Assembly (NCBI GenBank): GCA_964247055.1
Contig: OZ176051.1
Location: 1,426,001-1,490,000 of the forward strand
DNA: 64,000 bases
Reading direction: 5' to 3'
Source: Paragordius varius
Lineage: Eukaryota > Animalia > Nematomorpha
Shown: piece by piece, positions 2,481-61,571 of the stretch
How the letters are laid out: each line of letters opens with the position of its first letter
Numbering within the stretch: the first letter of the stretch is position 1
Notes under the pieces: model-generated
Told to the model about the DNA's origin: nothing
Databases searched by the model: none
The model's input: the letters and a program-made list of their open reading frames with translations, nothing else
Position numbers and translations under genes: made by a program

Positions 2481-2797
2481 CAACACACTTTGATGGTTGA
2501 CGCGGTAGCTCAAAGGCCAATTGCTCCAACCACAACAGTTATAACCACTACAAAAGAGTAAATATTAATTTATCTTATCTTAGAACGGGTAAGGTTAATC
2601 ATTGCTTGCATGCTATTATCAGCATTTTCTTCTTCCCCTGGATATTTGTTTGGATTCTTTTGGTAAATAGTTCATTTTTTAATTTCTAATTTGACGCATA
2701 AATTAAAACTAAACCCTAAATATTTTTTGCTTCGCCAAGTTTGTTTATTAACTCCAATTGGATTTAATAGTGCCATACTAGAAATTCGGTGGCTTGA
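2481..2797 (+). CDS. Small Pro/Thr-rich protein with a C-terminal membrane segment (~56-60 aa)
   Basis: Exons 2481-2557, 2584-2662, 2771-2797 join in frame via GT-AG introns of 26 and 108 nt: QHTLMVDAVAQRPIAPTTTVITTTKETGKVNHCLHAIISIFFFPWIFVWILLCHTRNSVA*. The start may be ATG 2493 or an unseen upstream exon; the last exon is less certain. Confidence 0.6.
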
Positions 2798-3650
2798 AAT
2801 ACAGTAAAAGTTTAAATTATAGACAAAACTTAAAAAGTTTATTTTTTTTGTAAAGACAACTATACTTTTTTAAAACTAAATCTTTCCTATAATTATTACT
2901 GTAAATAGGGACTCGTTTTATCAGGATTAATAATGCGAGAATTTCTATGTTGTATTTGTGGGCCATCGAATGCAAACGCAATATTATCACTCAAAAATTT
3001 TTGCGCCAAATTAATTTCATTGTCAAGTTCTGTTTTTTTGATTTGTACTAAATTGGTTTTATTTAGTGAAGTTAAAACTGCTTTTTAAGGGACGATGTTT
3101 TAATGTCAGGGATTGCATGGAACCATTTTTATGAAATCCAAACCTTTATCTTTTTGAAAAAAACGGTTCCAAAAAATAAATAAAGTTTTATTATTTAAAT
3201 TTAAAATATAATTATAGGAACCAGAATCATATAAAACTGGAATGACCGTATTTTTTATTTTTAATAAATGTATTAATAATACTTTTATTAAATGTACTTT
3301 TAAGATATGCCTAAACAAACGAAAAAAACGACAAATGACAGTTATCAAAATTTGATTCTCAACGCTTTTTGCATTATGTATGGGCCTAACAATTTACTAC
3401 ACAAATTTATGGCTTATAAGCAAATTATTAATATTGACAACAATAAATTCTAACATTAATTTATTCACTTTAAAATTTTACTAAAATAAAAAAAATTGAC
3501 TAATTTTGGACAACATTATATATATATTTATAGTGAGTGTGGGGTAAAACTTAGTTTTATAAAAAATACAAAATGGAATTGTTGTAGAGTGTGTATGATT
3601 GATTATCAAATTTGCTTGGCTTTTTTTGCCGTGCAATATTTAGCATTAGA

Positions 3651-7313
<3,663 letters not shown>

Positions 7314-9419: not shown

Positions 9420-9990
9420 TCTTTATCAGTAGTTGGATCTGGCATTTCAGCGGACATAGCAAAATCTATTTGATTTGACATAATTTTTGGTAATAGCCAA
9501 ATTCATATTTGCCCTTGTGGTAATCCTTTTTTGCCATTCCACTGTATACATGCTACGCACCAAACACTTATAACTTAACTATAAAATCAAACAAAGATTT
9601 AAGCTTCTGGTTAAACACTCCGGCTGTAATATCGCATCTATCCTTCGGTAATTATCCATGTAGAAGTAAATTTTATATGGTATTCCACAGAAGATTACAT
9701 GAAAATGTAATAAACAAATCTGGACCATACTGTGCCACGTTAGACCAAAGCATCCTGCGCGTATTTATGCATATGGACGTGACGGCATAAATATGATGAT
9801 GCCAAAATTGTATATCATTCAACATCCTAATAATAGAGTCATTTATTACTGCATCACGTAAGTGTATATATTTTTGGAACGGAGTTTGGGTTGTTTTAAA
9901 CGAAGATACAAACAACATACGCTCTGTTTCTATCTTTGCATACATGTCTACAATGTATTGGTGAAATAATTGTCTACATTGTAAAATATG
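9420..9990 (-). mobile_element. Helitron Rep/helicase pseudogene fragment
   Basis: FHQYIVDMYAKIETER, YIHLRDAV, YGPDLFITFSCN, YTVEWQKKGLP and SAEMPDP motifs of Helitron Rep, interrupted by frameshifts. Confidence 0.85.
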
Positions 9991-11400: not shown

Positions 11401-11439
11401 TTTCCCAAGCGTTGATTACAGCTCAAACTAATATTATCA

Positions 11440-12383: not shown

Positions 12384-15331
12384 TTATTTGCTAGATAGTT
12401 GAATGTATTCGACAAAAGGTAGTTTTTCACTTTTCTTAGCCGGAAAACTCAAGAAAGACATTTTAGGGCGAATTGATTTTTGAGATGTGAGAGTACCATT
12501 TTGTATATTTTTGTTTTTTAAAGATGGCTCATATATTTGAGATATGTCATGCTTTGTTACACATGTTCCACCATTGCTAATATTTATGGGTGTATGGCAT
12601 TTTTCATAACCCTATTATATAATGTTTTATAAACTTTATTTAACTAATATTTTCAAAAAATAGAAAATACCAATATCAAACCTGATTGTTTTCAATTAAA
12701 TCGTGTACAATTTCATGCAGACAGCTATTGATAAACAGAGGAAATTCCAAATGTTCAATGAGAATCCATTCAAAAGCATCCGTTTTAGGCCACAAATATT
12801 GGAACGAAAATTTATAGGCTAATCTTTGAGAGCACTGGTTAAAATAAAGAGTTTAAGCATGTAAAATTTAAAAAAAAAATTCTCATGAAAAATTTACATA
12901 ATGCTTTTGACATGGAGATGTATTGAAGTTGGAGGTGACACTTTCATCACTAAGATTGAGAGATTCGTATTGACTAGTTGAAGGTTTATTGCACAAAATT
13001 ACATTATTAGAAAAAGCGCATGGAATGTAGGATTTTTTTTCATTATTTGAATCAATCACATCTTGTTTGTGATACGAGGTGATTCTCCAATTTTTAATGC
13101 GAGAAGTTTTAAAAAACATGATATCTATTTGTGAATTATGAAAGATATGAGACTAAAAATTATGATATTTACAGTAAATGTAAAAAAATAGAAATAAACC
13201 TAGCGAAGGAAAAATATTAATAAAAGAAAGCCGCTTAAAAAAATAAGAAAACCTATCAGTTAAAATAACCAAATCCGTAATTTTATATATACAATGTACG
13301 CTAAATATGACGAAACAAAAGGCTAAAATATCAGCCTAATGTTAAACATCCCTATTCACAACATCATATAAATCAACAATTAAAAATTTGGTGACTTTTA
13401 AATTTAATTGGATTTTTTACTTTGAATCAGATGTATAAAAATCTTAGACTTTTATATTAACACTTTCAACTGTTTTAATTTAAGAGACCTTGAATCTTTT
13501 TGATGTCGTCATTTCCATTAATGTGACCATTAGCTGTGTTAAAATTATGGTTTTTTCCTTTTTCAGGTACAATAACTATCCCATCCATTCCAATCATTAG
13601 TTTACTGATTAAAACAGTTTTCCCAGTATTTTCAAGCGTTAAGTATGGATTCATATTGTTGGGTAATGTATGTTTTGTATTGATTGTGAGGTAATTAGCA
13701 AATGCTTCTTTATCCAAAAAGCTTTGTATGTTGGAAATGTAAGATGTGTAATCAGAATGAACAGGTGAAAGCGATAATATCTAAACAAAAAACAAGATGG
13801 TATTATATTAAAAATGCAATTCAATACCCCAAAATAAAACAAAACAAGATAAAATTTAATTTAACTTTGATTAAAAATGGCTTTAATAAATATTACTGTG
13901 TAGAACAGAGTACAATTAATGATTTATCAAAAAGCAATAAGTATCCTAATTGTATATTTAATATTTATTTTTTGCATATATAAGCAAAATTACTTACATA
14001 TTTAACGTCTTTGAGAGATAAAATCTCATGATTAACAAAGTGATACAGTACAAGTTTGGACGTTACAGGATCATTAAGCAATTCAGAAGTAGTGTGTTTA
14101 TCCCAAAATCTACGATAGCATAAAATAATTATTTTTAGTAGTTTCATATAACTCCTCCTGAATAAAATTCTTAAAATACCACAGTAAATATAAACTAAAA
14201 AGCTCAAGCTATTCATCATACAATCATTTGATTTCTCCTTGTAAAGTTAAAATTAAAGTTGCGTGTCCGATGGTTTGTGGGTGTTTTAGAGCTCATTATG
14301 GGCCAAAATCACATATTTTTTGATTTTAAGACATGAAAAATGTAGAATAAAGCTTAAATAATTTTCGGAAAAAACTGAAAATTTAGATGTCAAAAATGGT
14401 CTATGCGGATATTGTTTAATATATATACCCAAAATAGAAGTAATTATAAAGGTGTAGAAAAGTCCATTGTAATAATATATTTTTTTACCTAATACCCAGC
14501 AAAAATTGCACAGAATATTCTGTATCATTGTAACATTGTTCCAGAGCTTTTTTTGTAAGGACAGGACATTCAAAATGATTTAAACGAGTCATATAAACGA
14601 AAGAAGTATCACACTTTTCTAGCAGGATATTTTGTCCGGAGATATTCGTTTCACCATAATTGCAACCTTTTATGATGCTTAGCGTTAAGGATGGAATGTA
14701 TTTCAATGGTATGGATAAGGTGTGGCAAAGTTTCTAAATTACATTAAAATGATAAAAATTACTTCAATTATTTCGAGTGTAGATGCAAATGATGATATAG
14801 GTAATTCTAAAAGGTCGTCTGTTAGAGGGGACAAAAAAATTTTGATTGTCGATATAGAATCATTGGGAAATAAGTTTGAGGTAGTAACATGTTTGTAAAT
14901 ATTTTTTTGATAAAATTTCTGATAAATTAAAATACATATACTGTGTGCTCCTGAATCATACTTTGCATAAAGTATGTATCTTGTAAAATTTCGGGAAAAA
15001 TGGTAACTAAAATAAATTTAAAAAGTACAAAAACTTGATTGTAAAAATTTTTCCAAGGCCTCCCTTCTCTCCTCAATTTCAAAATCACTCATAAAAATGT
15101 TTTTTGAAGGGAATAAAACGTTTTTTATGATATTAGGATGCGATTGTTTAAGCTAAGATAAATTATTTAAATACTTGTTCAAAAAATTCTCGCAATTTTT
15201 TATAACGTATACTTGAATAAGGGACTCCATTAACATAAATTATGTAACTCTAAAAATAAAAATATCAATGTTACAATATAATTGGAGTTTTGTGTTCTGA
15301 TTGTTTCCGTATCAGGAATGGAGAAATGCAT
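12384..15331 (-). CDS. SNX17: Sorting nexin 17-like (PX + FERM-like), ~587 aa, 12 exons
   Basis: Exons 15331-15275, 15249-15175, 15152-15035, 15006-14942, 14918-14763, 14733-14489, 14109-13994, 13945-13914, 13780-13489, 13124-12898, 12834-12682, 12611-12384. N-terminus MHFSIPDTE...SYIIYVNGV...IRY...FPSK...IEERREALEKFLQ matches SNX17 (MHFSIPETE...VNGV...VRY...VEQRREQLEKYMQ); FKTSRIKNWRITS and FQYL...EWI...SCLHEIVHDL match FERM F3. Boundaries of exons 7-8 are less certain. Confidence 0.9.
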
Positions 15332-15386
15332 GACTTACGATTTTGTTTTAAGGCGAGGCCCAAATCAGATAAAAATTAGTGTGTGA
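15332..15386. promoter_or_regulatory. 55-nt interval between divergent SNX17 and GFM2 start codons (putative bidirectional promoter / overlapping 5' UTRs)
   Basis: CAT at 15329-15331 and ATG at 15387-15389; a GC-rich core GGCGAGGCCC in otherwise AT-rich DNA. Function is inferred. Confidence 0.6.
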
Positions 15387-18300
15387 ATGGGATTTTTATT
15401 TTTTAAGCATGCAACAATTTTGAATAATTTTAAATATTTTCGGGACCATATTTTTATCAAAACGTTAAAAACAGTAGCCAAACCTGATAATATAACAAAT
15501 GCCAATGCTGACATAACTAAAATTAGAAATATTGGTATTTTTGAATTATAATAATAGGTATATTGGCGCATGTGGATGCAGGAAAAACCTCTACAACTGA
15601 GATGATGCTACATGCTTGTGGTAGGCTTAAGTCACCCGGACATGTTGATGATGGAAATACGGTTTTTATTTTATGATATTTAGTTTTAAATAAAAGTTTC
15701 CATATAATACACGGTTTTAAAAGATATTTACCAAGTTATAAAATACCTTCAAGCTTTGGAAAAAACATAACAATACATATTTAGCCAAATTGGTCCCTAA
15801 AATTGTATAAAATAATATATTAATAATAAATCACACACACACATTAATTTAAATTGGTTTTCTCCGAGAATAATATTAATTTTAAAAGAAAACATGTTAT
15901 ATCAATATTTATTATACACATAATTACGAACCGGCATAGAGTAGTCAACTTACCCAATTTGTAACGAAGCACAAATGCATGATTTGTATTCAATATTTAA
16001 TTTTGTTTTTGAAAAGTTTTATTTGATTAATGTGCTACTCACCGGTAGCCTTACTATGTTAATTTTATTCCTTTATAAATTTACATATATTCAAAACCCA
16101 TTGATTAAATTTTGGAATGGAAACTAGAATGAATGTTTGCCGTTTTTTAAATGGTGAAAAACACACTCAATTATATATAATGAATATTTCAAAAGTTATT
16201 TAGCGTGTTCAATATATATCAAATATTTAAGATTAGCGACACAAAAACTTGATGAGGATCTACGATTTATATCTTTTCTTTAATTTTCATTGCTTTTAGG
16301 TTACAGATTTTTTGGTTCAAGAACGGAACCGAGGGATCACAATTATGAGTTCTTGCGTTCAAATGTTTTGGAATGAACATCAAATTAACATTGTGGACAC
16401 CCCGGGTCACATCGATTTTAATTTTGAGGTTGAGCGAACTTTGCAAGTTATTGATGGAGCCATACTTCTTATAGATGCTTCATCTGGTAAGCGTTTTTTC
16501 CTAATAAATATAAAGTTAAAATTTTTTTACAGAATTTGCATTTTATCCATTTGAGTTAATAAATGATTTGAGAAACGATCATGCCTATATAAGGCGTGAA
16601 AATTATATTTTGATCTGCTGCGAAAGAAATACTAAATATTTATTTCCTTTTATAATGCTTTTTTCCAAAAATGGGGCTTAATTATATAAATATATAAACT
16701 CTTTATTTTTCACATCCTTAATTACACTAGACAACAAATTTTTCTGCCATTCGAGTTTTTTGCATTTTTGATATTTAATATCATTTTAACAGTTAATCTG
16801 AAATAAAAATCATAACTCGTTGGAAGAATTTTGTATAATTTAATTTTTTTGATTATGCGCCCTCTTTATCAAAATTTTACTAAAAAATGTTTTTCTTTGA
16901 AAATATACAAGTAATGCCCATTTGTAATATATCATTCGAAAGAGTATTAAAAACTCTATAAAACTAATATGTATTACATCGACAGTGAATATTGGACACA
17001 AAGAGCGACAAACGCGCGAAGCGAGAGCATTTTTTTAATTATTATATTTTTAAAACTAATGAATGAAAATAGCTCAAACTTTGTTTAGATGGAGATGAAT
17101 GTCCAAAAAAGATAACAAAAGAAAGTTTTTTTTGATTAAAACATTTTTAATTGCTTTTATGTCACTCAAAACAGCCATTTTTAAGTTTTTTGTTTTTTAA
17201 AAATTACCATCTCATCAATATTAATTTATTTTCTTTACAAGGCTGATAATTTCGAAAATTTAAAGATAAAAACAAAGTTTATGTATGTTTAATCTTTTAT
17301 AGCGATTATGTAATAAATTTACAGTTATAACTATGCATTTTAGTATCCACTAGGTAAAATATTTATGATAATAATAATTTTTATTAAAAAAGCAAACCAA
17401 AAGCTTTTCCAAATATTTTTTTTTAAATTAAATACTAATATCACCCTAATAATTATATTAAAATAATTTATAAAATTTTTAAATTAGTTTGTCTGTGAAA
17501 ATTCTTGACTTATTTAAGGATTGAAAATTTTGACCATTTAAATCCAAATAACGTTTACATCCGATTGATTTAAATGACTTAATACCATTTAAAAGATGCA
17601 GTTTTTTGCGCTTTTTCGAATGATATAAAATACATGGCTTCATATCTAAAACTTTAAATATTACTATATTTCGAGTTTAATGTTAAATCGGGGCCAAAAT
17701 TTATCGATAAACTCTAATATAAAAAAATTCTTCCATGTAAGACCAATTTTTCCTTTCAGATATAATAATTATGTACTTTAATGAAATAAATTTTAAATTT
17801 ACAAGAATGGCAGTTAAAAAAAGTTAAAATTTGTTGTCTAGTGTTATACATCAAAAATCATTTTTTTAAAATCGATTGCCTATTTTCTACCTTTTAAAAT
17901 AACCGCCCGTTTGTCTTGATATGAAATATATTTTTCATATGAATTTCTTATCAAAAATATCTTTGTTTTTTTATTCCCAAACCAAAGTTATCGCATTTTA
18001 TTATAATGAAAATTTAGATAATGCAAAAAGAATTTGCATAAAAATTATATTTTTTGCTTAGGAGTTGAATCCCAAACTCAATCAGTTTGGGAACAATTAA
18101 TGCGTTTCAAAATTCCAACAGTGTGTTACATTAATAAAATGGATATGTGTGGTGAAAATGAGCTCAAAACTACACTTCAAGATATTAGTGCATTATGTAG
18201 AAATTATAAAATAACCCCATTAATTACTCAAATTCCTCGCTTTTCTCACGATATTAATAAGCAAGCCAAACAATTTTGTGATGTTATTCCATTGAATTCA

Positions 18301-21300
18301 GGCACTGGTAGTATAATTTTATAGGTGTAAAATTTTTTTGAGTATATTTTGGTTTTAACCTAAATCAATGAATAGTAATGAAAAAAAAATACATTTTTTT
18401 ATATCTAAACGATCTATAAAACTTTTATTGATAATAATCGCAAACTATAAAAATATTTGAGATTTTAACACTTAAATATCGTAGTGGTTCATTTATATAA
18501 AAGGTTGTCTTTTCTATATACTTACAATATAAATAAATATTTAGAAAATAATGCTTATCTAATAGAAGCAGAAGAACACAAAAAAGAGCGCTGTGTTATG
18601 ATTGATACTTTGGCTGAAATAGATGATAACTTTTATGAACTACTAATGTCACGTGCTCTGCATGATAAAATAACCCTGGCTGAAATACAAAACGCTATTC
18701 AAGAAAACACGGCGCGATTGAAATGTTTACCAATCCTGTTTGGATCAAATTTCCCAAAAGCAGCAAAGTTATTAGTCCTTTTAATTCAGAGTTTTGGTAT
18801 AAGAATGGTTTTTACATTATATTTTTACTGTTTTCATTTAAGATCGAAAAATTTTCGCACAATTATAATTTTTTTAAAATATTTTCCAAAGGCATTAAAG
18901 GATATATTAAATGAGTTTGCTCTAAAAGTGGTTTCATAGCGTTTTTAGGTAATTTTATATATTTTTATACCCTTAAAAATATTTATTTATATGTAGCTCA
19001 ATAATGACATTTTTCATAAATTAAACTGGATATTTTATAGACAAATAATTTAAAAGTTTAATAATAAGCTATCATTAAGTGTTTCTCTATTTTTTCGCTT
19101 CTCTTTTCTAAAATATTTATAATAGCGATTTATATAATTATTAAACGAATTTTTTTAATGTTTTGGCAAGTGGTAAACATATTTTAATAATTATTAAATA
19201 TGCCCGAAAATTGATATATGTTTAATTTTTGTTTATAAAAGTATAAGAATATGTAATAAATAAAATCTACAATTCAAATTCACCCTAAAAATAAAATATG
19301 TGTTTTCGGGCTAATATAACTCATCATTAAAATATATATGGCATAGTTTATTTGTTTTAGTATTATATTAATTTTAAACAAAATCTTATTTTTTAAAAGG
19401 TAATTTTTGATTTTAAAAAACACATAATTTATTTTAGGGTGAATTTAAATTAGTAAAGGGTGAGTTTAAATTGTTTAAGGGTAAATTTAAATTGTTTTTT
19501 TGAACTGTAAATGGTATATTATATTTTGTGATTATATTATTTTTAATTAGTGTGCCGCCTTCAAAATTTATATGCCATTTGTTGGATGCGATTGTGACTT
19601 ACTTTCCTAACCCTCTCCAACTCAATGGTAATTTTTTAATTTTATTACATAAAAAAGTAAAAAACGAATTTTTTTGTAATGAATACCATATATTTTTAAT
19701 TTTTACCTAACCTATATGATTTATATTGTAAAATTTAAAATTAGGTGTGTTCCCATTTTTCCATTGCTTATTTTGTAACTTAAAACAATAAGTTTTACTA
19801 GCGAAAATCAAAGTTTTAAAATTTGGTTTTTTTAATAGAGAAATATTCGTCTTTTTTATCTTTTGGCTTTATTTTTAATTTTCTTTATAATAATATAACT
19901 TTTAAATAGAGGTATTATTAAATATTATTTCTTTTTATGCCTTGTGTTTTATAAAATTATATATATAGATAAGTATCTTGATATTGAATCATCTAATGGC
20001 GAAATATTCCCCCACGTAATAAATGAACTTAATCAAAGTCGCAATACATATTTTACCGTTTTTAAAATTTTGAATCACACACAGTATGGGTTGATTGCTT
20101 TCGTGAGAGTTTATTCGGGCACACTTTTTCGTGGTTCCCTTTACCAAAAAATTAATCGTGAAAACTTAACTCATTCTCAGTTAAATCTTAAAAAAGGTAT
20201 GGTTTTACGAAATTATTATATCTCTAAATTATTTGAGTTTAAAAGTGAAATAAAAATATGTGTTTGCTAACTAGAAAGACCTGAAAAGATTAATGAAATA
20301 TGGAATATACAAGGAGAGGCATTAGTTAAAACTGGTATAGTTATTTGAAATATTTTCTTTTGTAAATAATAACAGTAGAAAGACATAACATTATATGTAT
20401 ATATATAACGAATTTTTTTAATATAGATAAGAATATTTTTAAACCTTAAATTTTTTAATATAACTGATCAGTTAGAGTTAGAATTTTTGTAAAAATATCT
20501 TAGTTTCTTAATTTTATGTTTTGTCTTTTAATTTTTTTTACCGTGATTTTCATGACTTTAGAAGAGGCAAAATCCGGTTCTATTGTCGTCTTAAGTGGAT
20601 TAACGAAAGCACTTACTGGCGATATATATGTGACACAATTTCTCAACAATGTTTTAACCACAAAAACATCAATGGATCCGAATAAAAAAACGGACAAAAC
20701 ACCTGCAGACATAACCTTATCATTTATCAGTAAAATTATAATTTAAAATCATAGTTTTAAGATAATATTTTTAAATTTAACAAATTTGCTATGTAAAACT
20801 TTTAAAAATTACAAAAAAACTCAAAAAAGATTAAAATTTGATAAAATTACTATTTATTTATTCTTGATTTTTATATGTCGCCTATCGTTTTCTTTAGGTA
20901 TCAAAGAATATTGATTTACAGTATTTGAAATACATAAGTTTTTATGCCATTATTTATAACCAGATAGAATTTACAACAAAGAGCCTTATTTTCTTTATTT
21001 TTTCGTTTTTTTCCTGCCATTGGCCAATAATGTATTAAATAAAATAAACAATTCTTTCCAAATACTGTATATTCAAACTCAATCACTTAATTTCAAAAAA
21101 AACAAGGTTTATTTTTTTGCAAAAAATAGGACAAGTTTTCGAAGCGCACTCAACATATAAATCCCTGTATGTTCCTGAACCAATGTTTTTTTGTGAAGTC
21201 ACAGCACATAAACCCAGTGAACAACGGCAATTGGAAAATGCCTTAACTATTTTAGCCAAAGAAGATCCTAGTTTAAGGGTGAAATTAATTTAAATTGTTC

Positions 21301-24300
21301 ATAATAGTCAAATTTTTAAATAAAGTTTTATATTGTAAATCAATAAATGTTTAATTAAAATTTTGTTTGATAGCAAATATAAATTAATAATGTTTTAGCG
21401 ACAAAAACGTTATTTGATTTGTTTAAATAAACTAAGATTATTACATTGATGGAAAAAGAAAAATTGAAGATCGTTTAAATATATTATGTACAACAAAAAA
21501 TAAAATTTCTTCTAATATCTAAACATTAAATATGTTAAATTAAAAGTTTTTGTAGCCTCGAAAATAACTAGCTTTCCAATACCGTATTATTAATATTTTT
21601 AAAATTTTAAGAATTATTAAAATCAGTTTTAAAATTTTTAATTTAATTAACTCTCATATTTTGAGTATCCCTCATTATTTTTCATATTGGATGAATTTTT
21701 ATTCTTTTTTACAATACTATGGTTAGTTTTTGTTAATTACCAGAGTATATAGTGGTATCGATATTATTCTATGTTTGGCCTCACTTACCGGGATTGGCTT
21801 ATTTCTTTATGATTTTTAATAAATTAATTTTTTATAAAATTTCACGGATTAAATTGATTTTTAGTTAAAGATTATTCGTAAGCGACTATAATCGGCATTT
21901 ATTAAGCTATGCAATAAATTTATTCAATTTAACGAAATTTATTTAATTTTAATAAAATTTTTTTGTTAAAATCATATCATTAGTATATTACGCTATTATA
22001 TTGCATATTGAGTTGTTTACTCTGATTCTCGGAAGTTGATTTAAAATGTTTTTCATCCTAGCAAAAAATTTAAATAAATTTTGAAATTTTTGAAATAAGG
22101 TAAGTATTCCATCTATATCAAATTCCACAAATGTACCTCAAAATATTTCAGCCGCCAATACTGAGTCAAACATTTATAATTCAAACGAAAACTTTAACAG
22201 AATAAATTGTAATGATAATACAGTTGTGCTGAGTGGTTTAGGCGATCTACACATTCAAATCGTTAAAGATCGCTTACGGACTGAGTTCAATGGACTTCAA
22301 GCTTATCTTGGGCCTTTAAAGGTAGATTTTCAAAAAATTATGCCATAAAAATTATTTTTTGCTTCTCTAATAAAACCAAATAAAGTTTGAAAACTTTTCA
22401 GTGATATGTTATATATTGTCATATTAAAATGTGTATAATTGCATTTTTTGATAATTAAAATAATTAATTATGAGATGGACTATTGCCTTTGGATTGCATC
22501 TTGTTATGGAACTTAATCATTTTTTGATATAGAATATTATTATGAAATAGACAATTTTTGTTGATTCTTGTTTTAATAATTTTATGAATATAATATGTGT
22601 TTTGACCTTATTTTTAGGGCTAATTTAGACCAGAGCATTTTAAATTAAATATGAACTAATACTTTGGACTTTACAAGTAAAGGCACTTGCTATTTTTAAA
22701 CTTAAATTTTTAACAATTTTCATCTTATTCCCTGCTATTTATATATTGGTAATAAAAATATTTTTAATATTTATTTTTTACAATTGAATAACATATTAAT
22801 GAGGTCTTATTAGCTGTTTTGCGATTCGATAAGTTACATTACAATTGTTAAAATATAATTTGTTTACCCTAGGGCCTTTAATAATCCTGATCAATGCAGT
22901 AGTTATTACTTGTATCTGTTGTATTTCCTTGCCCACATTATATAATAAACACTATTTTGATTTCAAAGTTTGTTTAAGTCATGCAATAATTGCAGATATT
23001 TGGATGATATTTAGTATGCAAAATTGGTATGAAAAACATTTTTTAATTTTGTGGCTTTTTTGATTTATATATTTCCAATATGGGAAAATCATATTGATAT
23101 TTTATTAAATGTATATTGATTTTTTGTTATAAACTTAATATCAAGTCAACTTGAGTTGAGTTGTAGGTAATTATGATATTACGGTTTGATTACAAGGTTT
23201 TTTTTATAAAAAGGTATTTTTATTTTTTGTAGTCCAACAAATTTATAAATATTGGATGTAGTCATGTTTACCGGTTTTTTGGTAAAAAACATTAAATTTT
23301 GAAAAAAAATCAATTATTTATTTTTATATTGTCCGTCGTCTTCTACACATCGCCCATCTCTCAGGTGATTTGTGAATACCATCCCAGAAAAACAGATTGT
23401 CGTTTGCGGCAAACCATTTATTAAGCCATTTTCCAACGTCCTCGAAATAATTCCCCCTCTTGGATGTATCCCATTGATGCGTACATGTATTATTCAGATG
23501 GCGCCATATTAGACATCAGCGGATGCGAAAGAAATTCCCATCGAAGCAATTTCCAATTCTTTTAATAGTTTTGCTGTGTGAGACGGAGCATTGTCATCAA
23601 AATCACTTTGCCATGTCTTTTGGTCCATTCCGGTCGTTTTTCAATTAATACATGGTTTTAATTAATTATTAGTTTGGCGATAGCGTTGTTTTTAACTGTA
23701 AAAGTTCATGAAACACCAGAGATTATCTTTTTGCTGGATCTATTCGGCCATGATGTTGATAAACCGACTTGGCAAGGTTAAAGCCACTTCACTTCTCATA
23801 ACTTGTCACAATTTAATTTAAAAATTTTGCTTTTGTGACTCTGAAGCAGTATTTCACAAGTAATTTTTCGATTTGCCTTCGTTTAAATTGTGTTGGACTC
23901 ATTGACTTTATTGGCCTCTTTAATTGCTTGTATATTCTGCATGTTGCCGCCGAGTTTTAGTTGGTCTATCTAACTCTTGCACGTTATCGTTTTCGCGTTC
24001 TGTGGTTTACCGCGCCCATTCTTTATATTAAAATCACAACTTTTAAATTTTCTAAATTTGATAGAGTATGTTGACCATATGTTTCACCAACAAACGAAAG
24101 CTTTCAACAGTCTTCTTTTCTGATGAAATTATAAAAGCAATGTTACAGGCTTAATATTTAATAATTATTGAATGATAAAAACAAGACGCTAATATTTGGC
24201 GAACACAGTGAGTTAGTAGTTTAATGTCAGACGAACAAAATGGGGTCTGTATCAAATTAATCGTCTGCGTATTTTTGTTGACGTCTTCTCTTAGTTAAAC

Positions 24301-27300
24301 CGGTAGAGACTAATGACTACATCTTTTCGTAAACTCTAAATATAAAAATAATACTAGTTTTTTATTCAAATAAATAAATTAATTTATTTGCTTTTTTATA
24401 CATTATTCCATTTTTATAAATATATAGATATCAAATCATGTAATAACATTATTCTTATAAGGTCATATATAGGTTATATTATCTCTACCTAAATTATGCA
24501 AGATTGGTGTTTATCAAAGATTTTCAATATTTCATCATAATTTTAATTAATGAATTTTACAAAAGGTTTTTTACCTTTTGAGTGTGATAAAATTTGATTT
24601 GATATAAATAGATTTAATCTCTAGCCATTTTTTTATTACACTAATCCAAAATTAAACTTTAATTATTTTTGAGATGGGTTAATACCTTTATTTTAACCAT
24701 TTTTATATCATTTTTGATTGATATAAATAGATTCCATATATGAGAAGAAAAATTGTGTTACCAAATATATATGTTTTAAAGTGTTTTCTTTCCTTTAGAC
24801 TTGTTTTATTACCACACTTTTTTCTCTCTAAACATTTTCTAAAGCAAACAGCCAAATAAGTTATTATACCTGCCAATTTTTATTTTTTTGAAAAAAACTT
24901 TTCATAATAAAAATTACCATGTCCACAACAGTAATATTAATAAGACATGGAGAAAGAGGGCCAGAAAAAGAAATTCCAAACATTCCCCCAGGATTAATCA
25001 ACTACCTTTTCCCATTGGGTCTTAAGGAATTGACTGCGCTAGGGTTCGAAAAAATGTTTAAACTCGGTCAAAACATTAAAAATGACATTTTGGTGCAAAA
25101 ACATTTAAGTAAAAACGATATCATAGCTTACTCCAGTCCTGTGAATCGTTCAATTAAATCAACTGAAGCATTGATTTTGGGGCTTTTGACAGAAAAATCT
25201 TTCAGACCTGTCTCGCATCATGCCAATGTAAATCTCTCCCAGAAGAAAATGGGTAAACCCATATATTCAAAACCTAAAACTATTACAATAAACACTCATA
25301 AAACCATACCTTGGTTATCCCCCATAACTGGGAATCAAGAATTAAAGTTTATGTTGCTCAATCATTTAGCAAACTGTCCTTCAGTTCTTGAAGTTTTAGG
25401 CCAACTTTATCCCATCCTCAATTCGGTTTGGATGAAAGCATTTGGCACACAATTGCTGCTACCTTGCCCTACTTCCCCTCATACGGGAATGAAACCTTGT
25501 GATTTTTTGCGACTTTTTTATTTGGCCGATGGTATTCTTTGCATCAATCATGCCTTACCCAAAAAGAAAACAGTCAACTATTTCCATACAAAATTTTCTC
25601 AAAGCAAATGGCTTTTTGATGATAGGATAGTTAGGGCTTGTAATACACTTGTTCAAACTATCTTCAAATATATGTTACCGGAACGTGATGATTCATTTTT
25701 TTGTAATTATCAATTTTCTTCTCCGACGCTCTTTTTGTCTCACATCCTTGATTCATTTATGGTTAAACTTCAATCTTTCTTCAGTCAACGAAAGTATTTG
25801 GACAAAATTATTGTTCTAGGGAGTCACGATCATATGTTAACTGCCGTTTTTACCTGGTTGGGCTTAAATAACCACATTTCGTATCATCAACAGTATAGAC
25901 CGGGTTATGGGTCAACTATAATATTTCAAAGGCATGTGCCTAAAAGGCATTTTAATTCCTCTAAAAACAAAAATTCTCCCTTATTTCACATATTTTACAC
26001 TTTTGATTACGATAAATCGTTCATCAAATTGTAGGCAATGTTAAATAATTGTTGTTACTAAAAACAAACGTTAAAATCTACAACCTGTACTTTATATTTT
26101 ATGTGAACGTTATCCGCATATTTAATTTAAAATGCTAAATATTAACAGTGTACTTTACCAAATATATACGTGTTTTTGTAATTTTTTCATGCTTTTAAAT
26201 AAAAATAAATGTACAATTACAATTATCTTTATTGTATTTGTAGATAATATTTATTCAATATGTAATAGACTCATTGTTTTTGGTTTTGATCAAAAAATGG
26301 GATTTTTATTTATATAACTACTTTTTCCCTGCAAAATTGTATAATTATACTAGCCAAATTTTTATCTTCAATTATATTATTATTGTAGGCCTCTTGGAAT
26401 TGAGCTTTTGATAAATACTTTGGATGTTATTTTTTCAAATAATGTCTTTTATTTCTAAATATAGTCGAAAATTAGTTATTGGCTATCCCAAAAAATAATA
26501 TAAAAATTTTTCTGAGTTAAAAAGTAACTGGTTTCATTTTAGATAAAATTTAAGTAAAATTTTGAAAAACTGTCGCCCTATACTATTTATATGTAAATTA
26601 CCTAAAATATATACAGGTTTTCTGTTATAAATTATGAAGTTTTTAAAATTGGGTGGATTCTTCGATGTCATATAAAACATACAAATGACCATACTTTTTT
26701 TAAACCAATACCCATATAAGGAACGCTGTGCGTAGCATAAAAAACTCTCTCTATATTTATCAACTTCAATCAAGTTATAACTTTGAATTAGGACACCTTA
26801 TTAAAAATAGAAAAAATGCATGAGCTAATTATACAGGCGCTGTTTGTTTTTAAAAGTAGGGGTCAACTAGTACGAAAAAGTATGGTTTATTTTTTTCAAA
26901 ATATATTTTTAATAATAATGTTATTTATAGAATATAAGCCTTTCTCCCGGACTATATTATCCATTAAATTGTATCACAACACCTATATTTTTATCATTTT
27001 GAAATATACATTTTTATAAGATATAAAAAGATGTTAAATAATATCCACTTTTTGACTTAATATTGGTGTGGTAACAATAATGGATTTATAAATAGTTTGA
27101 TATAAATAACCAACAAATAATAGGGTTATAAATTATTTTAGCGCAGTTATTTTTAAACTTTCTAATTATAATGTTTAACTTATATTCCTATCGTGTTTTT
27201 TATAGGTTAATTACAAAGAAATGATACATGAACCAACGCGTGTAAAACACACAATCCATAAATTAGTAAATGGTCGTAAAATATTTTTTGGTCTTGATCT

Positions 27301-29216
27301 CGAGTTGTATTCAACCTACAATGATACGGTTGAAATGGACCTTGATATTTTTCTAAACGATATAGATTCAAAATCCATGTTAGGACAGGATAATCAAAAT
27401 TTTAAGCACATTGAAGTGGTTCATAGCCGTGAAAATAATTTAACTCAGGTTATTTCTTCTTGAATAATATCAATGAGTATAATTTCAAAAACATACATTT
27501 AAAAATATTTCGATCGACATTTTAGGTCCCAGAAAAAATTATAAATGCGATTGAAAAGGGTATGCGAAATGTATTTACCTTTGGAGGCCCAATTCAAGGA
27601 AGTCCGATTATACACACGGGCATTAAATTACACGGCTTAACCTGTTTTACAGGTTTTTTTTACATATTTCAATTTCGATTTCCATTTTAGGTAATAACAG
27701 CAATCCTGCAAATAACTTCAATTTTATTGCGCCTCAAATCCAATCTCAAACGTTGCAAGAGGCTATTTGTGACCATCTTATCTCACCCTGTTTGCATATG
27801 CTGTCAAGTATGGCATTTAATTCACAGGTAAGGCAAATTTAACTTATCAAAATTTTTTCCTGAAATAAATGGGCACATCTTCTCAGTTTGAGTAAAATTT
27901 GGGAAAAAAGCGTAGTTCTAAAGTAAAAAAATAGTAATATTTAATAAGTAAAAAGTTATTTTTAAAGTCAACAACCATATTTTTTATCAGTATTTTTAAT
28001 ACGAGGACAGTTTAATATGGGTTATATAAAATTAAAAGTTTAATATGGCTGGCTTCATAAAGATAATTGACATTTTATTAAGTTTCGGTTGAAATAAAAA
28101 AATGTTTAAATTACGTCTTATATTTCAATATATTACTACTGTAAGACATATTTTTAATCGACTAAATATATGCAAATTATATTTAGGAAAATGCAGCAAA
28201 CATGTTTCCTAATGTAACCTTGTTAGAACCTTATGTTTTAGCCTCTATCTGCAAAATCCCAACAAACAGTCTTTCCATCTTGTTGTCAAATCTAAAGCAA
28301 AAAAGATGCAACCATTTCAAATTTAATACTTCCACAGGTTTTTTCCACTAAATAATAATTTTAATGAATTTTTAACAAAAACTGAAAGCTTTTTTTGCGT
28401 TAATAAAGCATATATAAAACATTAAAACCCAAATAATCAGTATAATAATTTGCAGTTATATTTATATTAATTACGTAATTAGTAACTAAATTTTAATTTA
28501 CGCCTTTTTCAAATACATATATCAATAATTTAGCATATTATTTATCACGGAATAACGGATTTTTACGTGAATATTTACAAGTTTCTAGATTTAAAAATAT
28601 ATGAGGTGTAATAATTTATTCAAAAAATACTTAATATTTGGTTGGTTCAATCTAAAAATACCTATAAATATATAATTTATCCAAATATTTGACCAAAAAA
28701 ATTAACAATTTAATTCATCGTTTCATTACCTTCTAATATAAAATTACTATTATTATAAAATAATCATACCAACTTCCAATTATAATGTGAAAACTAATTA
28801 AAATCAATTGATTTCTCATACTATAATTAATTTAATCTTTTGATATTTTAGAAATAAGTGTTACTTGTTATAACCTTTGATCTAAAGACGATTGACAAAT
28901 GCTATCTCTTAAGTTTTTATTTGTAAAGTTTTTTTTACCAAAGATATCCTTTAATTTGATTATCTAATTTTGGCCAAAACAATATAAAAATAGGACCCTG
29001 AGAAGATTTTGAAAAAATTGGAAAACATTTTTTCATTCCGTTTAAAAAATTAAGGACTATGTTTTATATATAGCAAATGAAAACTTTTACGATTTAAAAG
29101 CCATCATACCATTGATTGAAATGGCCGATTTTTCGAACGTTTTGCGCAACCTGACATCTGGCAAAGCATGGTTCAAAATGAAATTATTGACCTATCATCC
29201 TGTTGCGAAATACTGA
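15387..29216 (+). CDS. GFM2: Mitochondrial elongation factor G2 / ribosome-releasing factor 2 (16 exons)
   Basis: Exons 15387-15534, 15558-15661, 16300-16486, 18062-18307, 18545-18767, 19551-19627, 19969-20196, 20275-20334, 20562-20729, 21130-21278, 22100-22321, 27206-27448, 27526-27652, 27691-27827, 28187-28337, 29074-29216, all phase-compatible. [61 protein letters not shown] and LRNLTSGKA; basic/hydrophobic N-terminal leader. Confidence 0.93.
16725..17843. mobile_element. 1.12-kb non-autonomous TIR element (CACTA/CMC-like), copy 2, in GFM2 intron 3
   Basis: CACTAGACAACAAATTTT ... AAAATTTGTTGTCTAGTG with TTA flanks; collinear with 5517-6641. Confidence 0.8.
19268..19514. mobile_element. 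~250-bp foldback MITE (AAGGGT 21-bp family)
   Basis: Ends AAATGG|TATA; three 21-bp AAGGGT(G/A)A.TTTAAATT units; inverted copy at 49959-50203. Confidence 0.7.
23290..24030 (-). mobile_element. Mariner (Mos1/mauritiana-like DD34D) transposase pseudogene in GFM2 intron 11
   Basis: [51 protein letters not shown] and GIHKSPERW...DDGQY closely parallel Mos1; frameshifted. Confidence 0.9.
24919..26034 (+). CDS. Intronless histidine acid phosphatase (clade 2), 371 aa, nested in GFM2 intron 11
   Basis: RHGERGP at residues 9-15, [20 protein letters not shown]. In-frame TGA at 24889 with no AG before the ATG, so no upstream coding exon and no signal peptide. Confidence 0.9.
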   Translation: MSTTVILIRHGERGPEKEIPNIPPGLINYLFPLGLKELTALGFEKMFKLGQNIKNDILVQKHLSKNDIIAYSSPVNRSIKSTEALILGLLTEKSFRPVSHHANVNLSQKKMGKPIYSKPKTITINTHKTIPWLSPITGNQELKFMLLNHLANCPSVLEVLGQLYPILNSVWMKAFGTQLLLPCPTSPHTGMKPCDFLRLFYLADGILCINHALPKKKTVNYFHTKFSQSKWLFDDRIVRACNTLVQTIFKYMLPERDDSFFCNYQFSSPTLFLSHILDSFMVKLQSFFSQRKYLDKIIVLGSHDHMLTAVFTWLGLNNHISYHQQYRPGYGSTIIFQRHVPKRHFNSSKNKNSPLFHIFYTFDYDKSFIKL

Positions 29217-38075: not shown

Positions 38076-45200
<7,125 letters not shown>

Positions 45201-48008: not shown

Positions 48009-52713
<4,705 letters not shown>

Positions 52714-55461: not shown

Positions 55462-58014
55462 ATGGCGGCATGGGAACCGAAAGCTCGGGAATCTGCCGTT
55501 TTTAATTATTTTCTCCATCTTTCTCAGGGCAATGTTAATCGATGCCCAGATATCAAAATTCTTTTGGGAGATAAAACATTCCCATTCTACAAATTGGTTC
55601 TTTGTTCACAAAGGTTTGTGTATTTTATTTGCGGTCATATTTTTTGCACAAAAATGTCTGATGAAAACATGTTTAATTTATATTATATATATAGCAATTT
55701 CTTTGCGGAAAAGGCTATTACAGGCAATGAAATTAAAATACCTGATGATTTTCAAATAAGCGCAGATACGTTTGAAAAGATTTTAAAATTTATGTCAGGG
55801 ACAGACCCGGGACTCTCAAAAGACAATGTGGAAGCGATAGAAAAGGCTAGTCAAAAATTAGGTATATTTTAAAAATCATGAATTTCGTTGTATTACAAAA
55901 ATATTTTATTATTAACTAAGAATAATGTATTATAACATGGATAGCTAAACATTAGCTTTTTACAAGCGAGCCTTAATCCAGGCAATTTTATAAATGAGCC
56001 GTTTCAAAAATAATTTAAGAAAAAGAAAAATCTCAAATCTCTTATGGGTTTAACGATGAGAAAGGGTACCTTTTTGCCATCATTTTTATGGCTAAAAAAT
56101 TTTATAATTTTTTGTCAACTATTTACTGGCTCATTTACGGCAAATATAAGTCTGCTCAAGTCTTATAGATAGCGTTTAGTGATTTATTTATTTATGTCAC
56201 CATACTTTAAAGTTTGCTAACATAATATACTTGAAAATATTATAAAATTAATGATTTATAACCAATAAATAACATCTAGGCATTGTGAGATTACAAAAAC
56301 AATGTGAATCCTACAAACAGTCTCTCCAAACATCAGGAACTTCGAGTTTACCATCAGGGGGAGATATCGCGAACAAAGTATTGAGGACATCTTTAGGGGG
56401 AACCGGAAAAGATAAGGATGCTATTGCTTGGGGCAAGGATTATTACGACCCTAAAAGATTATGGAAGCCGTTGGCGCGATCATCTATTATTGAACATTAT
56501 TTAGGTATAAAATACTTTTTTATTAGCACCATAGAACCCTGTCTATGGCATTCCCAGGTTTTAAACTTAGTTTTGCCATGTCTTTCTCCGTATCTATCTA
56601 TCCTAAAACGCCAGAAAACGCTATAGACAGGGTCTATGGCGAAATAGTTTACGGATATGACCGCACGAGAGAGGGATATCATATATATGTGTAGAATAAC
56701 CAAATGTGATTTTATCGTTATAACGAAAGATTTGTAACTTTTCTATTATGATATGCTCCATAGTAATTTTTATTTGCTAGGTTACCTGTGGAATCAAAAC
56801 AGAAAAGAAATTGCAGATGTGACTATCATTGTAGGCGGAGTAGCCTTCAAAGCACATAAAATAGTTTTGGCTTGCCACAGCAACTATTTCCAAACGCTAT
56901 TTCGCGACACGGATGGAGCATTAGAAATAATGGTGCCCAAATCTCTTAACATTACCGCAAACACTTTTTTCACCCTGCTAAAATTTGCATATACAAATGA
57001 GATTGAGATTAATACCACAAATTTGAATGAAATTTATAATGCTGCCACCAGGCTTAAAATGCCTCATCTCATAAAGTTGATTGAATCCAAGTTTTCATCA
57101 GCGTTACCTTCGCTTCAACAAATGCAACAGAAACAAGAAGAACAATCTATGATGCAGCAATTTGGAGCCGTGCCTAGCAACGCAATGATGCCGGAAATGC
57201 CTCTAAATTTTGATCCAAGTGCCAATTATCAAGGTATGCCAAATAATCAAAGTATTCCGATTAATTACAACACCAATAATAGCAACATGAGTGCTTTTCC
57301 TTTTAACCCACAAATGATGTCAGGACCTGTGTCTTATCCAACAACTGGTATGACCCCAACACAACCGATGTCAGGTCCAGGACCGCAAAACCTTGCTCAA
57401 CTTTTCCAAACGCCTCATTTCTTGAATTGCGATGTTGATACATTAGTTAACTTATTATCAAACGATAATATCAGTTTGGCCAATGAATTTCAGGTGTTTA
57501 ATATGGCTTTAACGTGGTTAAAGCAAGGAAATGGATTTGAAAGATTCAATTATCTCGTTCGGGTAATGGGTTGTGTCAGGTTTAGTTTAATGAATCAACA
57601 AGAACTGTCACAATGTGTACGTTTAACTTTGGATTGGTTTAAAAGCAACCCAAATTATCGGACTATGATACTAAAAGCCAATTGGTAAACTAATTTTCTT
57701 ATATTTCCTTTTTTAATATTTATCCAATGAAATTTTGAAAACACTTTAGGTTAACTGTAAATGAACAAAGTAACATCTTTCAAACGTTTGTACGCAAAGA
57801 TAAACCCAGAAATTATTCCTATGTGCCTAATGTGTATCCCTGTGGCGGTGCGCAAAATTATCAAAGTGAGGGCGTTTCTGGTATGCGTTGTGCGGTTTGT
57901 CCCACGTGTAGGAAACCATTTAGTCCGGTTCCGTTTGCCCCTTCAGAACCTCCGATATGTCCGGCCTGCAAAAGACCAAATCCAAATGCTGCTTCTCTCA
58001 TTATGGCTCAATGA
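55462..58014 (+). CDS. Double-BTB / partial-BACK protein with C-terminal CxxC-x16-CxxC motif (597 aa, 4 exons)
   Basis: Exons 55462-55861, 56280-56504, 56781-57684, 57750-58014 in phase. BTB1 (PDIKILLG...YKLVLCSQ), BTB2 (ADVTIIVGGVAFKAHKIVLACHSNYF), Q/M/P/N-rich tract, BACK C-half (FLNCDVDTLVNLLSND...EFQVFNMALTW...VRFSLM), CPTC...CPAC. No kelch repeats seen. Confidence 0.85.
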
Positions 58015-60799
58015 TAAAACAGCTTTATACGGTGTGAAAACTCTATCTTGTTATGTTAACTTAAACGTTTTCTCTTATTTATATATATATAATAATTTTA
58101 TAATGATTTTTAAAATACTTGTCAAGTCATGTTTTTAAATTATACCATGTTGTATGCCAGTATATGTTTTTCTAATTTGGATGTAATTACGTTATAAATA
58201 AATGCGTTTATTAGTTTGACATTTAATTACTATGTGGGGTAGTTTAATTTAATTAGATATATAAGAAGGATATTGGGCCAATCAATCATATATAGCATGG
58301 TATAATTAAAAAATTAAAGGTAAAAAAAACTTTAGCCAACAATTTTTGAGTTTGTGTCGCTATAACAAATGATGTAAAATAAAGTTTTTCTTTATACGTT
58401 TAAGTTATAATTCGCCAATTATCTAGTGCTAAATTAGCTGTTTGTTTCTATTGGATGGGGCTATTTTGATAATGTATAAGTAAAATTCTCAAACGATAAA
58501 TATGTATCATTACAAATTTAAACTATTAGACACAAACCACCCTAAAATATATTTCATATGAATAAGTTTATGAATGGATTGTTGACTTAATGTTAAAAAC
58601 TATATGAAATAGATTTTATTGTTTTGTAATACAAATCAAACTCAAGTTATTGCGTTTCGCAAATATTTTGTTTTTTCAATTAAATTAAATATAATGAAAA
58701 AATATTTTAGATATATCTTTATAAAACAAATCAATAATATCCGTAATTTCAATAAACTCGGCTGAAATGGGCCAAATCTATTGTAACTCTATCGAATGTC
58801 CGAGATAGCGTGATGAGAATACAAAATATTATGACATCAAAAACAATCATTTTCATGAAAAGGATTTGTTTTAAAATTTATATTGCGTATTTTTATGGGA
58901 GGTTTTTTTCCCTATTTTTAAGAATGTTAGAAACGATTATTTTATTTTTTGAAATACCCGGTTAAAGTTGGCTAGTTTTATTAATACTCACTTTGTCTGG
59001 TAAAAAATATTCAAATTGGATCAATTTTTACATAGTATTTTACCTTTAAGTATGATTCAATAAAATATGTATAACAAAACACCTCATAATATAATAAGAA
59101 TATTTTTGTCTCAAGGAAATTTTTAAACCCATATTTCTAAAAGAATAGAATATGACTAGAAAGTGCATTTTAAGAGTCAGCTTATTCACACGGCTTATTG
59201 ATATTGGCAAATTAGAATTAAATCAACGCCTCATTCATTAGTTCCTTTGACACCTTTCTTGTTCCAAAGCTTATTTATTTAACAGTTAAAAAATTATTAA
59301 CAACCGTACTTATATAAAAATTAGAAAATTTTGTTTCATGACTCCTAGAGTCATTTAGATAGCATCCATATCCAATTAAAACAAATAGTCAATAATGTCT
59401 ATCTTTATATCGATATGTTTGTTATGCCAGTTTTTATTGAGATTCAAAAAACAAAATTCTCTAAAACGCAAAAAATCCGAGATTTTAAGATAATATATAT
59501 TACAAACTAGAATTGATGAATGTATTGCTGCAATCAAGGTCAAAATTTTGCCATATTGCAGTAAATAAACTTTCATATGATGCAATTTATAGTTTTAATG
59601 TTGAGTGCCAAGGTTGCATTGGTTTTTTATTGTCCATCCACCTTATTCTTCTTCGGTCTTGTGAGTAGATCTCATAATGTAGATATTGGTGCGGATGTTT
59701 TTGGAAAAATGCACACTTTGTTTTAAAATTTTATTTTTAGAAGTTCTAGCGTAATGCATTCTAGATCGAGGAATGATGATATTATAAAAAATTTATAAAA
59801 TTTAATAATACTATATTCTATTACCTCAGTATTTTAATTAAAATATACGATCATCACATTTATGATATATATATAAATAGTTTTTTTCAAAATATACCCA
59901 AATTTTGAAATAAACACATCTTAAAATCATTCTGAAGCGATAGAAATGTTAAGCATTATCAAATTTTATATTATTTTTTTATCATAAAGCGTTTCTATAC
60001 CGTTTTTTCATGCCTATATACTGAAATTAGGCCTCAACATTTTGCTAAAAATTAAATTTTTTAAAAAAGTATTATAAAATATAACAAATATATAAATTTC
60101 GCGCGATCCCGCATTTTAGCGATTGTTTAAAGAGAAGGAGCCCTTACAAGCGACTGAATTTGGAACTTTCGGAGCCCATAAAAAATAAATTTAATATATT
60201 TGTTTTTTATATGTGGTTATGATATATTTTAGATATCTTATTTCAAATGAAGCTTTTTCCTCATCACATAGTTTATCTGTACCAGTTACTACAAAATAAA
60301 AATAATTTTCTTACATCACTCGTAAGGGGAAAATTTTATATCCCCATGATCTCTCTACATTTTTTATCAGATTATATATAATTACCTTAAGAATTAATAC
60401 AGAGCATATAAGAGTGATCATATTGGCTATTTTTAAAATATTTCAAAGTAATTTGAGTTATTAAGTCCTTGTTACTAAAAATTATTCGCTTTTCTTTAAT
60501 GATTTTATTTAAAAATGTCTCAGTAGACCAAGTGTTTACCATATTTAACTATAAAAGATACAGCCTAGGCATCTATTCGAAAACACCCAATTTTTTATAT
60601 ACATCATGGTCTACTTATTTACAGTATTAAGAACACCTCCACTACTGTAAGCCCTTCAAACATTACCAACACTTTATATATAATTATATTGTTTGTTACT
60701 ACAATATGTGAATTATGCTTTATAAGCGCGGTTTTAGCCCATATATAATAATCATATTTTTTACATTTTTTCTTGGCAAAAACAGTTGTTTCAAGCGCC

Positions 60800-61571
60800 A
60801 TGCCTGTTGACCGTAAATCGAAATCCACATCCTTCAGATATCACAACCATAAACCCTATGTTAAAAAGGTATTAGCATATATTTAAATATAGCAATCAAG
60901 TATTGTATCTTCTCTTACAAACAAACTTTCATCACTTATACCGTCCTGGCTTAAATCCACCGAAACTAGTCTCTCTGAATTGCCAGATCTTTATAATAAT
61001 TTAAATAATGAAGAGTTAAACAATTATTTAAGCGAGGAAGAAGATATAGATATTGGTCTTAGCAATGGACCAAAAGCTCGTCATGAAGATTCCTATTTAG
61101 AATACAAAGATGCTGATGACTTGCATATTAATACGCAAATTATAACAAAAAGCCTTGCCATCAGTCAGACATATACCTCAAAAATTAAAACTTTAAATGT
61201 TAAATCGAAAAATAAAGGGGTATATGCTCCAAACAATATTGAAAGAGACTATTCCTTAAATTTTGATGATAAAAAAGTGAATATGGATAATCACATATCT
61301 TCAGCGCCATTTTCAAATATATACCATAATTTAGCTAGAAAACCTTTGATACACTATGAACAAAAAGTATACACTATCGCAATTAATTATTTAGATTCCT
61401 AAAACGGAAATTGCAATTGATAATGTTCCCAATTTTGTTCCGACATCTATCGGAGACACTTTTTCTCAATCGAATCAGATGAAACCCGTGGTTACGGAAT
61501 CCCTTAATGAGAGAAAACACAATTTTGCCGAACGAAGAAAACAGCGCCTCCTCTCACACACCCCATACAAT
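60800..61571 (+). CDS. NUP153: Nucleoporin NUP153-like, 5' exons only (gene presumably continues past the window)
   Basis: Exons 60800-60868, 60893-61366, 61395-61571 with 24- and 28-nt introns. HKPYVKKQSSIVSSLTNKLSSLIPSWL resembles the NUP153 N-terminal motif (IKPYQQ...GILSRVTESVKNIVPGWL). The gene model is solid; the identity rests on this one motif. Confidence 0.65.

Follow-up and report, generated by a model that had tools for sequence, protein, structure and literature searches.

The DNA analyzed here is a 64-kb window of the hairworm Paragordius varius (contig OZ176051.1, positions 1,426,001 to 1,490,000 of the forward strand; "the window" denotes this whole stretch), and the feature in question is a class of very short introns, 22 to 31 nucleotides (nt) long, predicted at the 5' ends of its genes. 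The GC content of the window is 24-31%, and its content is that of ordinary animal genes interrupted by introns. Repeats shared within the window account for 18% of it, open reading frames (ORFs) of transposons are present, and no tRNA genes were found in the 64 kb. The GC content is in line with the 26.93% of the published Gordionus montsenyensis genome, which has 63.8% repeats, with DNA transposons dominant (Gordionus preprint). The analysis covers eight spliced genes in this single window, and intron ranks refer to coding introns counted from the ATG.

The 5' ends of the LYPLA, SNX17, GFM2, ERK, and PAK genes were first read by eye. Gene models were built by a depth-first search that allowed only GT..AG introns with the lengths given in a preliminary description of the same DNA, combined with an open frame. 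The search produced a single full-length ORF for LYPLA (217 amino acids [aa]) and for SNX17 (587 aa), and two to four near-identical full-length ORFs each for ERK, GFM2, and PAK, among which the choice was made by conserved motifs of the human proteins. The BTB gene, a small putative membrane-protein gene (TM gene), and the 5' part of a NUP153-like gene were solved likewise with GT..AG introns and an open frame. In this rebuild of all eight genes, the intron lengths of the preliminary description gave unique or near-unique full ORFs, with the BTB gene corrected. The resulting features are listed below with the evidence for each model; introns of 22 to 31 nt are termed tiny.

3651..7313, minus strand: LYPLA/APT1-like gene, coding sequence (unique ORF and homology)
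7242-7265 (24 nt), 7187-7209 (23 nt), 7093-7120 (28 nt), 7019-7044 (26 nt), 6924-6947 (24 nt), and 6833-6863 (31 nt), minus strand: LYPLA tiny introns
3864-6716, minus strand: LYPLA intron 7 (2853 nt)
12384..15331, minus strand: SNX17-like gene (unique ORF and PX homology)
15250-15274 (25 nt), 15153-15174 (22 nt), 15007-15034 (28 nt), 14919-14941 (23 nt), and 14734-14762 (29 nt), minus strand: SNX17 tiny introns, followed by introns 6 to 11 of 379, 48, 133, 364, 63, and 70 nt
15387..29216, plus strand: GFM2 (mitochondrial EF-G2)-like gene (ORF solution and profile matches)
15535-15557 (23 nt), plus strand: GFM2 tiny intron, followed by 14 introns of 38-4884 nt
48009..52713, minus strand: ERK/MAPK1-like gene (ORF solution and Pkinase profile)
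52591-52615 (25 nt), 52438-52463 (26 nt), and 52355-52381 (27 nt), minus strand: ERK tiny introns, followed by introns 4 to 7 of 1015, 437, 549, and 1408 nt
38076..45200, plus strand: PAK-like gene (ORF solution; PBD/CRIB and Pkinase matches on exons)
38132-38154 (23 nt), plus strand: PAK tiny intron, followed by nine introns of 214-1275 nt
2493..2797, plus strand: small putative TM gene, 56 aa (ORF solution alone)
2558-2583 (26 nt) and 2663-2770 (108 nt), plus strand: introns of the small TM gene
60800..61571, plus strand: "NUP153-like" gene, 5' part (ORF continuity)
60869-60892 (24 nt) and 61367-61394 (28 nt), plus strand: NUP153-like tiny introns, followed by a long intron from 61572 past the window end
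55462..58014, plus strand: BTB/BACK gene (BTB and BACK profile matches on exon 4)
55614-55694 (81 nt), plus strand: first BTB intron, followed by introns of 418, 276, and 65 nt

Homology backs 15 tiny introns, namely those of LYPLA, SNX17, ERK, and GFM2. Over its full length, the spliced LYPLA model can be aligned with P0226 (47% identity, 218 columns); the two gaps, each of one residue, fall in the last exon, and the aligned region with P0191 contains no gap; in the alignment to full-length homologues found via the last exon, all six tiny-intron junctions are free of gaps. LYPLA exon 7 corresponds to positions 111-148 of the Abhydrolase_2 profile, and the best representative match of the last exon comes from the nematode Toxocara canis. 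SNX17 exon 3 covers positions 25-64 of the PX profile, the PDB match being specifically the PX domain of human SNX17. The GTP_EFTU profile is spread over GFM2 exons 2 (positions 8-37), 3 (44-103), and 4 (106-173), and later exons match EF-G domain 2, EFG_III, EFG_IV, and EFG_C in order. Similarly, the Pkinase profile falls on ERK exons 2 (23-59), 4 (74-138), and 5 (139-220), and the 18 residues of exon 3 fill the interval between exons 2 and 4. Reading-frame logic alone stands behind the other four tiny introns (PAK intron 1, intron 1 of the small TM gene, and the two NUP153-like ones). In the case of PAK, exon 2 has no in-frame ATG, and a different intron of 23 nt, at 38102-38124, is compatible as well. 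The small TM gene gave no family match in the profile search and is the weakest model of the eight; the NUP153 identity was searched for and not confirmed.

The BTB gene is the sole gene of the eight without a tiny intron. Its 81-nt intron is in frame and stop-free and was passed over by the ORF-based model; retention would add 27 residues within the BTB domain. Translated without splicing, exons 1 and 2 match the BTB profile with approximately 22 surplus residues, and removal of the intron restores the BTB consensus around "...LVLCSQS NFF...". The lengths of 418, 276, and 65 nt reported earlier are retained, but the first intron is the one of 81 nt, not that of 418 nt.

The rebuilt intron table comprises 59 introns. 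Nineteen are tiny (22-31 nt; mean, 25.5; standard deviation, 2.4), and the 40 others measure 38, 48, 63, 65, 70, 77, 78, 81, 108, and 133 nt and then 214-4884 nt; the size gap between 31 and 38 nt delimits a discrete short class. The median intron length is hundreds of nt, with about a third of the introns tiny. Within each gene, introns 1 to k are tiny and all later ones are not, with uninterrupted runs of six, five, three, and two, and they start 48-569 nt from the ATG. Thereby the table bears out the preliminary description, which had stated that the tiny introns extend unbroken from intron 1 within about 600 nt of the ATG (19 of 19), that intron 1 measures at most 26 nt in seven of the eight genes, and that no intron below 38 nt exists among the 33 starting beyond 600 nt. 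Up to that distance, 19 of 26 introns are tiny, compared to 0 of 33 beyond it (Fisher p = 4.7e-10). Calculated as the product of 1/C(n,k), the observed order has a probability of 9.8e-9, or of 5.9e-7 for LYPLA, SNX17, ERK, and GFM2 alone. A permutation test of intron order, as suggested earlier, was run on this window, and none of 200,000 within-gene shuffles reached the observed rank sum. Inside the 600-nt zone, too, tiny introns always come first (p = 0.0045). Position in the coding sequence fits worse than genomic distance or run order: GFM2 intron 3, at coding sequence position 439 and behind the 638-nt intron, measures 1575 nt. Both intron classes are real in this window, and so is the positional polarity, which far exceeds chance.

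Sequencing runs were chosen by sequence words from the ERK and LYPLA stretches; the listed RNA runs were without any of the sampled words. Reads of four runs (X2, X3, X4, and X10) were mapped on positions 12300-16600. Their depth was continuous over introns, contigs crossed the tiny introns unspliced, and no joint was present at predicted introns. Since introns and exons were covered alike and no spliced joints occurred, these four runs represent DNA. Polymorphisms among individuals support the gene models: all eight frameshifting indels listed fall in predicted introns or the 3' untranslated region, with coding sequence making up 51% of 12300-16600. Deletion alleles are present in the 379-nt SNX17 intron (14118-14181, 64 nt, and 14293-14362, 70 nt) and in the 638-nt GFM2 intron (16140-16284, 145 nt), and SNX17 exon 10 carries a 3-nt deletion. 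The only indel listed in a tiny intron is a 3-nt deletion at position 15016 in SNX17 tiny intron 3.

Tiny and other introns share their splice signals. Both classes begin with GT[A/T] and mostly end with TAG (GT[AT]...[TC]AG). A splice signal distinct to the tiny introns was not found; the other introns do just as well under position weight matrices of the tiny class, and T content together with the matrices gave no separation of tiny from other introns at n = 19. Given these identical signals, nothing points to a second spliceosome. Eleven of the 19 tiny introns carry a branch-like yTrAy motif at 7-15 nt from their 3' end, which is a weak enrichment (p ~0.05). Exons between two tiny introns have a median length of 68 nt versus 178 nt for other internal exons, and retention of any of the 19 tiny introns would lead to a premature stop within approximately 22 codons. 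The AT content is 82% in tiny introns, 76% in long introns, and 64% in exons. All seven genes compared (7 of 7) have a lower GC content at third codon positions (GC3) over the initial 450 nt of coding sequence than further down; promoter-centered GC-biased gene conversion was rejected because GC3 is lower, not higher, at the 5' end.

Hidden in-frame tiny introns were sought in the distal exons, and none was convincing: in-frame GT..AG candidates inside exons have an AT content of 58-73%, versus 71-89% in the real tiny introns. Among the rejected candidates is one of 30 nt in BTB exon 1, with 73% AT, which by reading lies toward the N terminus of the BTB domain; BTB exon 1 alone has no Pfam family match.

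Of the long-intron bases, 17% belong to repeats shared within the window; tiny and mid-size introns have none (0%). In three long introns the share is much larger: 64% (LYPLA intron 7), 73% (GFM2 intron 3), and 82% (ERK intron 5). The notion of distal introns as transposon-filled, put forward in the preliminary description, is accordingly borne out for just a few of them. One repeat of approximately 1.15 kb has copies at 5511-6666 (LYPLA intron 7) and 16719-17871 (GFM2 intron 3). Within ERK intron 5, approximately 190 nt are duplicated in tandem (50529-50669 and 50724-50851); the intron starts with the same 12 bases as the 25-nt ERK intron 1, and a 20-nt GT..AG unit stands at its head. An origin of this intron as copies of the neighboring exon edge was rejected in view of the internal tandem duplication. 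Transposon-related ORFs include a Helitron-like one at 9676-9996 (minus strand) and a hAT-like one (DUF4371, zinc finger) at 62654-64000, inside the NUP153-like intron.

The start codons of SNX17 (15331) and GFM2 (15387) lie head to head, 55 nt apart, so that the two promoters must overlap each other's transcribed 5' regions. The 4884-nt GFM2 intron 11 harbors a nested, intronless ORF on the same strand that encodes a His_Phos_2 histidine phosphatase of 371 aa (24919-26034, plus strand); the search for related loci found no record for this phosphatase. At the start of GFM2 exon 11 (22100-22210, plus strand), approximately 35 residues are without a counterpart in the EFG_III profile, which may reflect an intron 10 acceptor located further downstream or a lineage-specific insert.

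Clusters of short introns at the 5' ends of genes are known from trematodes. Berriman and coworkers in 2009 reportedly described 5'-clustered microintrons in Schistosoma mansoni. Small introns of S. mansoni are clustered at 5' ends (Protasio 2012, PMC3254664), and microintrons of Opisthorchis felineus (<75 nt, with peaks at 37 and 90 nt) form clusters, more often at the 5' end (Ershov 2019, PMC6530080, Fig. 6). Consequently, the same layout has been published, and the claim of an undescribed system in the preliminary description does not stand. Its idea of intron definition at the 5' end and exon definition further down is likewise already in print, as intron definition over exon definition was proposed for O. 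felineus, in which microintrons have splice sites closer to the consensus and have lost the polypyrimidine tract (Ershov 2019, PMC6530080). Trematodes, which are parasites, share with the window multimodal intron lengths in a large repeat-rich genome, adjoining short introns, a 5' preference, GT-AG borders throughout, and intron definition as the proposed mechanism. In contrast, the short class here is one of 22-31 nt, compared to approximately 33-54 nt in the ERK gene of Schistosoma bovis and peaks at 37 and 90 nt in O. felineus; its run is unbroken, with 0 of 33 distal introns tiny, whereas flatworms show a preference only and long introns interrupt the cluster; and the lineage is not a flatworm one.

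The ERK gene permits a direct comparison of intron positions. The first five introns of the S. bovis locus measure 33, 2172, 43, 54, and 4624 nt. Introns 2, 3, and 4 of the window (26, 27, and 1015 nt) share codon and phase with the S. bovis introns of 2172, 43, and 4624 nt, and intron 1 (25 nt) lies within 2 nt of the 33-nt intron. The ERK intron positions are thus old, and the tiny introns arose by shrinkage of old introns, not by recent gain. In S. bovis, the 43- and 54-nt introns are located approximately 2.5 kb from the ATG, behind the 2172-nt intron, which argues against a strict distance-from-cap rule in this, the nearest system described so far. The public gene call for this S. bovis locus is an 84-aa fragment (P0082) spanning 7.3 kb (L005 7523-14922), and a normal ERK 5' half with the 33-, 43-, and 54-nt introns can be read there; the fragment illustrates how microintrons break automatic annotation. 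Searches for a related hairworm locus with exon-sized queries gave no candidates with the LYPLA last exon or SNX17 exon 6, and ERK exon 5 gave only approximately 85% matches, from many animals; the contigs retrieved were Logan contigs, Toxocara canis (3' part only within the flank), and an unrelated metagenome eukaryote.

In intron-poor genomes (yeast, Microsporidia), short introns lie near the 5' end, which is attributed to the loss of 3' introns; in the window, unlike there, 3' introns are retained and enlarged. The long-first-intron rule, said to have been formulated for animals and plants by Bradnam and Korf in 2008, also ties length to ordinal position, but the sign is reversed here, the first coding intron being of the shortest class in seven of the eight genes. 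In a survey of 51 animal genomes, the only ones with introns below 30 nt were those of myxobolid myxozoans and Dicyema; nematomorphs are not named in its main text, nor is intron position along the gene analyzed (Hadjez 2026, PMC13644364). The Myxobolidae and Dicyema japonicum resemble the window in their canonical introns of approximately 22-27 nt, the conserved positions of these introns, the tendency of short introns to have short neighbors, and their occurrence in parasitic animals (PMC13644364). Their genomes are compact, with a median intron of 22-27 nt, whereas here the surroundings are rich in repeats and tiny introns keep to the 5' end; their trait of a median intron below 30 nt in a compact genome is absent from the window. 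What is new here is the lineage, the size below 30 nt, and the sharp all-or-none boundary.

The reading that we favor, with about even confidence, is a two-class, position-polarized intron architecture of the trematode kind that has an evolutionary filter as its cause. Ancient introns within approximately the first 600 nt of a gene would have shrunk to a near-minimal size of 22-31 nt and, lying between short exons, would be recognized across the intron; downstream introns, from 38 nt to several kb, would be recognized across exons. In some downstream introns, transposon copies and tandem duplications have visibly added to the length. Our best guess is that a filter, rather than a special splicing machine, created the polarity: insertions and expansions would be purged near the promoter and tolerated further down, and small deletions would drive introns free of insertions to the minimum. 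We propose that the unbroken run would follow from this, as everything behind an intron that has expanded would lie outside the protected zone. The size polymorphism of long introns among individuals was counted for such a filter. Several points weigh against it. Exclusion of insertions combined with deletion leaves unexplained why seven distal introns of 38-78 nt never reach 22-31 nt, and with only 17% repeats among long-intron bases, filling by transposons is seen in few introns. A model based on distance from the start and one based on runs are inseparable, the one informative case being BTB intron 2, the only intron that follows a non-tiny one yet still lies within the 600-nt zone. Furthermore, the evidence comes from eight genes and their coding introns, and all four mapped runs are DNA, so that the tiny introns stay predicted.

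The gap between the size classes, which the filter leaves unaccounted for, counts in favor of a regime near the cap or promoter, involving the cap-binding complex or RNA polymerase II in early elongation, that alone would let introns below approximately 32 nt be removed, such introns being forbidden distally. We consider this possible but doubtful. The minimal sizes do not overlap (22-31 nt within 600 nt versus 38-78 nt for the seven shortest distal introns), and the better fit of genomic distance or run order over coding sequence position, seen at GFM2 intron 3, points the same way; the S. bovis ERK introns of 43 and 54 nt so far from the ATG and behind a long intron speak against it, as do the equal splice signals of both classes. 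To our knowledge, an effect of the cap-binding complex is documented for the cap-proximal intron only and not for runs of five or six. It appears unlikely, in the same vein, that introns below approximately 30 nt, the usual lower limit in animals, can be removed only within a few hundred nt of the transcript start, with a co-transcriptional mode setting the sharp boundary in each gene. A mutational gradient, in which more small deletions or recombination-aided selection near transcription starts shrink 5' introns without any difference in splicing or insertion tolerance, would be compatible with a distance-limited zone and with the 3-nt deletion allele in SNX17 tiny intron 3 (15016); we judge it improbable, since promoter-centered recombination with GC-biased gene conversion would leave a raised GC3 at the 5' end, not the lowered one seen over the initial 450 nt, and the list of indels is partial. 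Finally, the polarity might be an accident of the eight genes sampled, or tiny introns or micro-exons further down might have escaped notice. Tiny introns are detectable only where the frame needs repair, the in-frame BTB intron was indeed overlooked earlier, and four tiny introns are without homology support. Such an artifact is nevertheless highly improbable: in ERK, LYPLA, and GFM2 the distal exons follow their profiles colinearly, with no block missing or in excess at the junctions except for the approximately 35 residues in GFM2 exon 11, the exon-internal candidates are poorer in AT than the tiny introns, and the order has a probability of approximately 1e-8.

The usual minimum-intron settings of tools of the STAR and BRAKER type are about the size of the tiny introns or larger. 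The Gordionus preprint, in which annotation was performed by STAR and BRAKER and a BUSCO value of 71.6% is given, does not use the word "intron". With minimum settings near the size of the tiny introns, the 5' exons of many hairworm genes may be mis-modelled, which could depress BUSCO scores and inflate apparent gene loss in hairworm annotations. If the pattern holds genome-wide, hairworms would add to the flatworms another animal lineage, unrelated to them, in which minimal introns cluster at the 5' end, and would be the more extreme of the two, with sizes below 30 nt and an all-or-none distribution in a repeat-rich genome. If this likeness is convergent, it would suggest that the polarity stems from a general constraint on the places open to minimal introns, and the sharp boundary would make such a constraint easier to test.

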